DNA of 63,747 bases, the filler included, from Olpidium bornovanus S191 (taxonomy: Eukaryota > Fungi > Olpidiomycota), in the NCBI GenBank assembly GCA_017911155.1. It is 29 parts of 29 records of this genome, joined end to end, with 100 filler letters (N's around TTAATTAATTAA, not from the genome) between each part and the next. Parts side by side here need not be neighbours in the genome. Positions count along the whole stretch, not along the records: positions 58,960 to 60,343 come from JAEFCI010000869.1; 28 more parts are not named here. One strand, given 5' to 3'. Positions 58,960-60,590 of this stretch are shown here, one piece after another; the first letter of the stretch is position 1, and each line of letters opens with the position of its first letter. The position numbers and the translations under genes were made by a program. The notes beneath the pieces were generated by a model. The model was given only the letters and a program-made list of their open reading frames with translations. It searched no databases and was not told where the DNA came from.

Positions 58960-60236
58960 CATGGAGTCCAACCATTTGGGCGGCGGGCGCCTGGTGATGA
59001 CCTCGGCGAGGAGAACGAGGACGACGGGCATCCAGCAGCACAAGGAGAGGGCGACGATCTGCGCCGACTTGAGCGCGATCTGGCCCTGTATCTGCCGGGC
59101 TTTGAGGTACGCGAGTTGCTGGCCCTTCGCGACGGCGCCGGTCGGCCCGTGTCCGTGGAGGGGCGCTCTGCTGCCGCCGAGAACGATATCCGACCCGCTG
59201 CTGGACGCTTCGGGCCGCGTCTGGGCGCTCTCGAGCCGCTTGGTATTCGCGCGGACCCTCTTGTAAATCTCCCAGTAGCCGTATCCCATCGCGAAGACCT
59301 GCGTTCTCGCCGTTGATTTTTCCGTTACGGGGTGAAGTGAGGAATGAAGGGGGCAGCAATTACTATATTGGCCCCAAAGTTTCATCCTCGCGCTACTGTC
59401 GTCCGAAACCCAAACCGGTTTTTTTTTTTTGGTTGCCCCCCCCCCCCCCCCCCCCTCCCCCCCCCGGCATCTGAAAGCATTTCCGGGCTCACCGTGGCGG
59501 TGATCCACGAAAGCGCAAGGAGGCTGAGCAGGATACTTTCAAGTTTCACAGAAATCCAATCGACCTGACAGTACCACCCGCTTAAAAACGGCGGGGAGGC
59601 GGCACCGAACGGGCGAAGCAGATGGGTCTTCAGCCTCAAACGCAAACCAAGAGTCGCCGAGGACCCGGTTCCCCACGGAGCCGCGGCTCTCACACTGGCA
59701 CGGGCGCACACAGTTCGCACCTCGGCTGCAAAACCATTCCCGAACCAAACCAAAACGGCATCGTCGAGCTGAGGATCGAAGCGATCCACGAGCCGAGCAG
59801 GGCGGCCTTGACGTTCCGTTCGGAAAGAGGCGTTTGGCGCACGATAGCCAGGTAGCGTTCGCCCGCAATCATAGCTTGGGCAGCGGGACGACGGGAAAAA
59901 GAGTAGGCGCAGAAAGCGCTCGTTTACTTTTCGGTTGGCAAAAACGGGCGGGTTGCAGGAAATGCGCGACCGCCGACTCCCCCGTACCTAGCGACATCGA
60001 CATCTCTGCGATGGATACGCTCGCTGACCACCCGAAGACCGTGCACCCAAATTTCCCGACAGACCAGCGTCCGTGCAGCGCGTTGCCGATGAGCCAGGGC
60101 AGACGCATGCCGTCGCAAAAGAGACCTGAAAAGTAACGGGGGCGAGTTGAGATTTCATGGCAAGCTTCTTTCTGTGTGCGTCGCTGAACGGGGGGGGGGA
60201 CGCCTTACTTGCGCATATCAAATTCATGAGACAAAT
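58960..60236 (-). CDS. Rhodopsin-family (class A, opsin-like) G-protein-coupled receptor, TM2 to ECL3; partial at both ends; exons 60236-60209, 60125-59988, 59874-59721, 59580-59493, 59298-58960
   Basis: All four introns are GT-AG and phase-consistent. The spliced protein has LMNLICASLF (TM2), GRWSVGKFGC (ECL1/TM3 Cys), AMIAGERYLAIV (ERY), SWIAS..MPFW (TM4), QPSGWYCQVDW (ECL2 Cys), GYWEIY (TM5) and CCWMP (TM6 CWxP). Confidence 0.85.
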
Positions 60237-60590
60237 CTGCGTCGGAAGAGCCGAAGCGTCGCACGAGCGGAGATCAGATGTGCCACTCTCCCAGCGTTAG
60301 ACGCGCAACGCCAGACGCAATCCAACGGACGACACTTGCAAAGNNNNNNNNNNNNNNNNNNNNNNNNNNNNNNNNNNNNNNNNNNNNTTAATTAATTAAN
60401 NNNNNNNNNNNNNNNNNNNNNNNNNNNNNNNNNNNNNNNNNNNCATGAATTAAACGTCCGACGAGAAGTGGTGTGTCGTTCCGGCTGGCCGAGCATGCGA
60501 TCCCATCCTTCGTCGGCTCTCGTTAACCGTCGTGCACGCGTACGCTTCTTTTCGCCCTCTCTCCCGCTCCCGCAACGATGGCCCTCCAAG

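Follow-up and report, generated by a model that had tools for sequence, protein, structure and literature searches.

A spliced, incomplete class A receptor gene of probable zoosporic-fungal affinity in Olpidium bornovanus S191, and its bearing on fungal type-2 opsins

The DNA considered here, which we call the window, is a stretch of 63,747 nucleotides (nt) from Olpidium bornovanus S191 (GenBank assembly GCA_017911155.1), in which 29 parts of the genome are joined end to end with filler letters between them. Our subject is a single piece of it, 58960-60343 (record JAEFCI010000869.1; 1384 nt, G+C content 60.5%), the minus strand of which encodes part of a G-protein-coupled receptor (GPCR) of the rhodopsin family (class A). 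The gene is a real one, spliced and incomplete, and runs from the second transmembrane helix (TM2) to the third extracellular loop (ECL3). The five exons of this gene amount to 747 nt of coding sequence, in frame and stop-free, and are translated into 249 amino acids that start with ICLMNLICASLFCDG and end in RRPPPKWLDSM; the four introns are all of the GT..AG type (Table 1). The listing of open reading frames (ORFs) for the piece breaks the gene up into four receptor-like ORFs on the minus strand, and gene callers overlooked it because it is split into small exons. An earlier first-pass annotation of the same DNA had described both features, that is, five exons in phase from TM2 to ECL3 and an ORF track with four fragments only; we could rebuild the spliced open frame, and the same four ORFs are listed. 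At the downstream end the gene runs off the piece at 58960, so that TM7, helix 8, and the C-terminal tail are missing from it, and at the upstream end six-frame translation of 60237-60343 gave no TM1-like frame. It is the shortness of the contig that deprives the gene of TM1 and TM7.

The product is matched by the Pfam family 7tm_1 (PF00001) with E=9e-23 and 81.5 bits, against a cut-off of 30.5 bits, over profile positions 23-228 of 260. Motifs were read from an alignment of 134 sequences that included bovine rhodopsin (sequence checked and identical to 1F88_A). Cysteine C3.25, in GKFGC, aligns to C110 of rhodopsin and the ECL2 cysteine, in QPSGWYCQVDW, to C187; ERY (3.49-3.51) stands at the end of TM3, W4.50 in GSWIAS of TM4 is the equivalent of W161, and the CWxP motif of TM6 reads CCWMP. 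The motif set claimed in the first-pass annotation (the TM3 and ECL2 cysteines, ERY, and CWxP) is therefore present in full, and the family match on which its receptor call depended lies well outside chance expectation. One class A position is altered, since D2.50 (D83) is replaced by Ser in the sequence NLICAS, a change that the first-pass annotation does not mention. Across the 134 sequences this column has D in 110, N in 7, S in 3, E in 3, G in 2, Q in 1, something else in 1, and a gap in 7. Asp at 2.50 is common, not obligatory, in class A receptors. An AlphaFold model built with fungal sequences only (mean predicted local distance difference test score, pLDDT, 83.8; predicted template modeling score, pTM, 0.77) has five long helices, TM2-TM6, and a beta hairpin in ECL2 with strands at model residues 119-121 and 128-130.

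Table 1. Parts of the receptor gene, its motifs, and repeats in the piece 58960-60343 (window coordinates; ICL, intracellular loop; L001, metagenome contig with the closest homologue)
Feature	Coordinates	Strand	Remarks
Upstream stretch	60237..60343	-	probably intron, perhaps with about 50 nt of ICL1 coding sequence; six-frame translation
Exon 1, minimal 28-nt form	60236..60209	-	start of TM2 (ICLMNLICA); acceptor cag, donor gtaagg; 5' edge uncertain
Intron 1, 83 nt	60126..60208	-	gtaagg...ttttcag
Exon 2, 138 nt	60125..59988	-	remainder of TM2, ECL1 (HGRWSVGKFGC), first half of TM3
Intron 2, 113 nt, phase 1	59875..59987	-	gtacgg...cccaag
Exon 3, 154 nt	59874..59721	-	end of TM3 with ERY, ICL2, TM4, start of ECL2; acceptor aag
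Intron 3, 140 nt	59581..59720	-	gtgcga...ttttaag; absent from L001
Exon 4, 88 nt	59580..59493	-	ECL2 hairpin with Cys (SGWYCQVDW), first half of TM5; acceptor aag
Intron 4, 194 nt	59299..59492	-	gtgagc...acgcag; absent from L001
Exon 5, 339 nt	59298..58960	-	remainder of TM5, long ICL3, TM6, ECL3; frame open at piece edge
TM2 with Ser at 2.50	60224-60124	-	spans intron 1
GKFGC with C3.25	60057-60043	-	Cys codon 60045-60043
ERY	59860-59852	-
CCWMP	59040-59026	-
RRPPPKWLDSM	58992-58960	-	end of frame
G10 run	60190-60199	+	in intron 1
T12 run	59419-59430	+	in intron 4
C20 and C9 runs	59436-59465	+	in intron 4; about 30 C with one T
Repeat, 20-nt unit x1.9	59201-59239		in exon 5; Tandem Repeats Finder score 57

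Only one close homologue of the product was found among the 5.8 billion proteins searched. This protein, P0001, is unnamed, has 266 residues, and lies on a metagenome contig of 1091 nt (Ga0181325_11820256, here L001; Joint Genome Institute metagenome 3300013895); the literature searched gave no paper on this metagenome. BLASTP gives 66% identity (129/194 residues, E=1e-92) and the MAFFT alignment 70%; the stretches ERYLAIVRQTP, MVLQPSGWYC, MGYGYWEIYK, LSLCCW, and LVLLAEVITRRPPPKWLDS are identical in the two, as are all of the last 19 aligned residues before the end of the window sequence. P0001 differs in having an ICL3 that is 12 residues shorter and in the part that is retained, for it is cut on the N-terminal side but possesses the TM7, helix 8, and tail that are missing from the window gene. 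The same gene, or an extension of the contig, was sought in metagenome contigs by protein pattern and by degenerate DNA pattern for EVITRRPPPKWLD and was not found; the EVITRRPPPKWLD pattern was also not found in prokaryotic genome contigs, a protein-pattern scan of viral contigs gave no match, and neither did exact look-ups of three window ORFs.

The splice junctions can be judged one by one. P0001 reads without gap or interruption across the junctions of exons 3 and 4 (VLQPSGWYC) and of exons 4 and 5. All junctions were also scored with a hidden Markov model (HMM) of 16-17 relatives, the window sequence excluded, against every open, in-frame GT..AG alternative at most 45 nt away, and the chosen junction ranked first at all four introns, with margins of 4.5-4.7, 0.3-0.5, 14, and 12-13 bits. 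Intron 2, where the margin is small, deserves particular care. The alternative within 0.5 bits (donor after 60032, acceptor before 59918) was rejected on two grounds: SRRP would fall inside TM3, and the DNA that would become coding is only 35% identical to L001, compared with 72-75% for the exon. With the chosen splice, the distance from C3.25 to R3.50 returns to the canonical 25 residues, and the distance from 2.50 to C3.25, 27 residues by sequence and alignment, is canonical as well. L001 appears to share the position of intron 2, ahead of A(M/L)I(A/S)GERY, since its homologous codon is preceded by an aag acceptor, upstream of which TM3 coding sequence is lacking.

The start of exon 1 is less secure. 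The frame stays open upstream of the exon-1 cag, and extension by SGTSDLRSCDASALPTQ (...SALPTQ) lifts the 7tm_1 score from 81.5 to 84.8 bits, with PTQ aligned to the 'ptn' of the consensus 'rtptn' that precedes TM2. Judging by the AG acceptors of the upstream stretch, exon starts are possible only at 60334, 60287, 60285, and 60236; the stretch also contains a CTAAC (60300-60296) and, in frame, a TAA (60299-60297). The true start of exon 1 may thus be 60287 or 60285, shortly past the CTAAC, and not 60236, which would make the exon about 50 nt longer. Given the open frame, the higher-scoring extension, and the other acceptors, this 5' edge is doubtful. An exon of just 28 nt, as first proposed, is possible, and it has the 3' donor gtaagg, but its 5' edge is not secure given the better score of the longer form.

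Codon usage and divergence bear on whether the gene is functional. G+C content at the three codon positions is 0.55 (GC1), 0.50 (GC2), and 0.79 (GC3), the same profile as in L001. Over 182 codons compared with L001 by the Nei-Gojobori method, nonsynonymous divergence (dN) is 0.217 and synonymous divergence (dS) 0.80; the ratio dN/dS of 0.27 shows purifying selection on both genes, and a dS of this size means that P0001 comes from another species or is a paralogue. Introns 3 and 4 have been gained or lost between the two genes, about 0.8 dS apart. A decaying or non-signaling relic (either a pseudogene or a receptor without G-protein activation) might be suspected from Ser2.50, which is rare (3 of 134 aligned sequences), from the sequence NTTAF that P0001 has in TM7 in place of NPxxY, and from the position of the gene on a 1.4-kb contig with long homopolymer runs. 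We consider this improbable, since the 747 nt in five exons contain no stop or frameshift, the splice sites are all canonical, the strong third-position G+C bias is identical to that of L001, the divergence has the pattern just described, and ERY, CWxP, both cysteines, and W4.50 are intact.

To place the gene among its relatives, an exhaustive HMMER search was made of 1.84 billion cluster representatives, with 346 matches at E<=0.001. P0001 stands at the top (E=1.5e-167) and the next tier begins at 6e-23. The named matches among the first eleven (E 6e-23 to 4e-16) are all from zoosporic fungi, and the named members of this tier are Boothiomyces sp. JEL0866 (KAJ3318892), Spizellomyces punctatus SPPG_03814, Sorochytrium milnesiophthora, Powellomyces hirtus, Gaertneriomyces, Blastocladiella emersonii, Allomyces arbusculus, Coelomomyces, Kappamyces, and Globomyces. 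The nearest named relatives after P0001 thus belong to the Chytridiomycota or Blastocladiomycota, with none from Metazoa or Dikarya. Among the matches for which names were looked up, animals appear from rank 43 (E 3e-10) and animal opsins from rank 65 (E 3e-8). When the family profile was run in another, word-indexed search of proteins, it yielded just five matches and added little, and no orthologue of more than 50% identity was found in annotated genomes.

The signatures of the fungal relatives are also those of the window sequence: ERYLAIV, QPSxxYCxxDW in ECL2, and RPxPxWLDS, or more generally PxPxW(L/Y)D, before TM7. Of the window product and P0001, only the latter extends to the helix-8 signature LDxR(F/W), which it has as VDRRF. 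The first report of this clade of class A receptors, with ERY and NPxxx, dates from 2012 and concerns Allomyces, Batrachochytrium, and Spizellomyces; D in TM2 and NP in TM7 are among the motifs that it lists (Krishnan et al. 2012, PMC3251606). The window sequence and P0001 depart from that list, the former with Ser at 2.50 and the latter with NT for NP, and we therefore see the pair as a divergent branch of the clade. The receptors of this clade, for example SPPG_03814 (XP_016608732.1, P0003), have, like the window sequence, the 7tm_1 domain, ERY, the ECL1 and ECL2 cysteines, CWxP, and the two loop signatures QPSxxYCxxDW and RPxPxWLDS; they are 22-31% identical to it and have no Lys at 7.43. 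The differences are again the window's Ser for D2.50 and, in its partner P0001, NTTAF for N/DPxxx. A neighbor-joining (NJ) tree, computed from 131 sequences over 229 columns, makes sisters of the window product and P0001 in 100 of 100 bootstraps. Membership of the zoosporic-fungal (Chytridiomycota/Blastocladiomycota) receptor clade is supported by the best matches and the motifs, as an affinity judged from relatives on a piece that carries no other genes. Two relatives, from Boothiomyces (P0002, 625 amino acids) and Sorochytrium (P0010, 817 amino acids), each contain two complete receptor units in tandem, which are either fused models of neighboring duplicates or real double receptors.

The same data speak to the origin of the contig, for which a contaminant (animal or other protist) carrying a class A receptor had to be considered. 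The sole close homologue is environmental, coming from a metagenome, and the placement inside the fungal clade is weakly resolved. Against a non-fungal source are the ranks at which fungal and animal names appear, the family signatures QPSxxYCxxDW and PxPxWxD common to the window and the fungal relatives, the short introns (83-194 nt), and the lack of a match in the viral or prokaryotic collections; we rate such a source as very unlikely. The first-pass annotation, which had mentioned rhodopsin-family receptors from zoosporic fungi and had named a metazoan contaminant as a risk, agrees on the former point with the named relatives and with the 2012 report, and no metazoan is found among the nearest named relatives. 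The tree of chytrid and animal class A receptors groups the window product with P0001, with the animal opsins in a clade of their own.

A type-2 opsin has its Schiff-base lysine in TM7, at 7.43 (K296). The last residue of the window sequence aligns to I290 of rhodopsin, and by gapless alignment the equivalent of K296 is the sixth codon beyond the edge, close to the distance of about five codons given at first. P0001 continues past this point with ...PPPKWLDSLGALMTCMNGVVNTTAFLLVDRRF / LGALMTCMNGVVNTTAFLLVDRRF; its residue at 7.43 is Cys, and its TM7 is free of Lys throughout. Within the window sequence itself Phe occupies 3.28 (E113) and Gln the E181 column, so that neither opsin counterion is present, and TM2-TM6 as read from the sequence have no pocket-facing Lys. 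Lys at 7.43 was found in none of the 38 nearest relatives tabulated. It does occur in 11 matches at ranks 65 and below, 10 of which were looked up: seven are animal proteins with opsin names (among them peropsin, UV opsin, pinopsin-like, opsin-5-like, Gq rhodopsin, and parapinopsin-like), two are nameless, and the last is a mollusc protein, also without a name. In the NJ tree the animal opsins with this Lys group in a clade apart from the window product, and the smallest split that holds the window product together with an opsin comprises a median of 87.5 of the 131 sequences, a measure taken on a distance tree.

Taken together, we think it very likely that the window holds a genuine, expressed-looking, incomplete class A receptor gene of the zoosporic-fungal clade, the product of which would be activated by a ligand, that is, by a chemical cue, and not by light through retinal. 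The seven-helix receptor would bind its ligand and pass the signal to a heterotrimeric G protein via the ERY/TM6 switch; in a zoosporic fungus its stimulus would be a chemical one, and not light by way of a Schiff base with retinal, because both counterion sites are absent from the window sequence and P0001 has Cys at the retinal-lysine position in a Lys-free TM7. Ser2.50 of the window and NTTAF of P0001 touch the same polar network (D2.50-N7.49) and may have evolved together, and with that network changed the activation of this branch is perhaps atypical.

Several points weigh against this ligand-activated receptor and should be kept in mind. The TM7 of the window gene lies beyond the piece, and the absence of the Lys rests on a homologue that is 66% (BLASTP) or 70% (MAFFT) identical. 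The chemoreceptor role is reached by exclusion, and ligand, G-protein partner, and expression are putative for this gene as for the whole clade. With D2.50 gone from the window product and NPxxY from P0001, signaling could be non-canonical or could have been lost. In the tree, the pair of window product and P0001 stands next to SPPG_03814 in only 25 of 100 bootstraps. Finally, opsins come first, by a small margin, both in profile and in predicted fold. Among solved structures in the Protein Data Bank (PDB) the best scores of the family profile go to cone opsins (150.6 bits) and bovine rhodopsin (138.5 bits), followed by the beta2 adrenergic receptor (134.9 bits) and M3; for the AlphaFold model, the 13 best matches given by Foldseek are all opsins (spider, squid, bovine, and cone), with query-normalized TM-scores of 0.61-0.73 and 15-19% identity. 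The single window sequence, searched against the PDB, places GPR84, M3, and CXCR1 above the opsins. By profile and by predicted fold, then, the family stands slightly closer to animal opsins than to the remaining class A receptors.

These structural matches are one argument that the gene encodes a true type-2 opsin, with a Schiff-base Lys at 7.43 in the missing TM7 and retinal binding for zoospore phototaxis. Animal type-2 opsins (1F88, the jumping-spider rhodopsin-1 6I9K, and squid rhodopsin 2Z73) are the best matches in profile and fold, and the window sequence keeps ERY, D190, and an ECL2 hairpin of rhodopsin length up to the Cys. Some fungal relatives are moreover named as opsins. Allomyces arbusculus P0012 (KAJ3366878.1), Coelomomyces P0163 (KAJ1511234.1), and Gaertneriomyces P0153 (KAJ3184843.1) bear among them the names 'Opsin-5', 'Melanopsin', and 'Trace amine-associated receptor 8', evidently automated best-hit labels. 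Ser is found at 7.43 in P0012 and in P0020, which represents the cluster containing the 'Melanopsin' entry, and since P0012 has no Lys there, names of this kind should not be used as evidence for opsins; relatives so named sit in the same Lys-less clade. Nor is the ECL2 sequence CQVDW, which the first-pass annotation likened to CGIDY of rhodopsin as opsin-style, specific to opsins: we rejected it as a marker because QPSxxYCxxDW is a signature of the whole clade and common to Lys-less receptors. What separates the window sequence from animal opsins is the lack of the E113/E181 counterions, Cys for K296 in P0001, and a separate clade in the distance tree. The term 'opsin-like' is fair for the overall resemblance in profile and fold, while the suggestion of a true type-2 opsin does not stand beside the missing counterions and the Cys at 7.43 of P0001, and we regard it as highly improbable. 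That the window gene should, unlike P0001, have the pocket Lys in its TM7 and be a real retinal-binding opsin of a fungus is an equally long shot; if true, it would be the first fungal type-2 opsin with sound sequence support, as the Spizellomyces case described below rests on a doubtful model. In a milder version, the Ser2.50/NTTAF branch would be a new signaling variant of an opsin-like fungal clade.

The remaining argument for a fungal opsin comes from a published homologue. SPPG_00350T0L of S. punctatus was described as a 'chytrid opsin' with Lys320 at 7.43, after the authors had repaired the 'truncated' SPPG_00350 model by means of one added base (Ahrendt et al. 2017, PMC5410147). The original protein in the supplementary files of that paper ends with ...LGAIVK*, exactly at the start of a GTAAGT, and K320 lies inside a 65-nt stretch of the form GTAAGT...CTAAT...CAG. 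When the unaltered genome is spliced there, it yields ...VPMLLDCLAFLGAIVNSAFNPVLFIVL, an exact substring of the model at NCBI (XP_016612672.1, P0027), which has Ile at 7.43. The repaired model returns to frame because one added base and 65 read-through bases make 66. Scored with an HMM of the relatives from which SPPG_00350 was excluded, the NCBI model obtains 295.1 bits with a gapless TM7 and the 2017 model 259.4 bits with insertions, a gap of 36 bits in full-sequence score. The Lys of SPPG_00350T0L is thus probably owed to the added base and to reading through a probable intron, as far as one can judge from the sequences. P0027 is match 27 of the exhaustive search (E=2.8e-12) and belongs to the same fungal class A clade, with ERY, LYCTGDW in ECL2, and LDNRW in helix 8; its intron positions are unlike those of the window gene, which is not its orthologue.

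This discrepancy between models matters beyond the present gene. SPPG_00350T0L is the only chytrid receptor published with a retinal Lys, and so the single Lys-bearing fungal type-2 opsin of the literature; in the papers that could be searched, we found no mention of the discrepancy. It has also served as a search seed for inferring a type-2 rhodopsin in the fungal ancestor (PMC9616733), and should the artifact be confirmed, that inference needs revisiting. For the field, this side result weighs more than the window gene itself. That zoosporic fungi possess class A receptors, of so far putative ligand and function, has been known since 2012, and to these the window fragment adds a divergent clade member with Ser2.50 and a homologue without NPxxY. 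The main value of the fragment is a negative one, in that no fungal type-2 opsin is added.

The remainder of the piece offers little else. Plus-strand ORFs gave no family match and are treated as antisense noise in GC-rich DNA, and scans for bacterial promoters and terminators and an Rfam scan of the piece returned nothing relevant. The short tandem repeat in exon 5 falls in the variable ICL3 coding sequence and is probably insignificant. The homopolymer runs of introns 1 and 4 are of a kind that is prone to sequencing error, and may be a cause of the assembly breaking into so short a contig.

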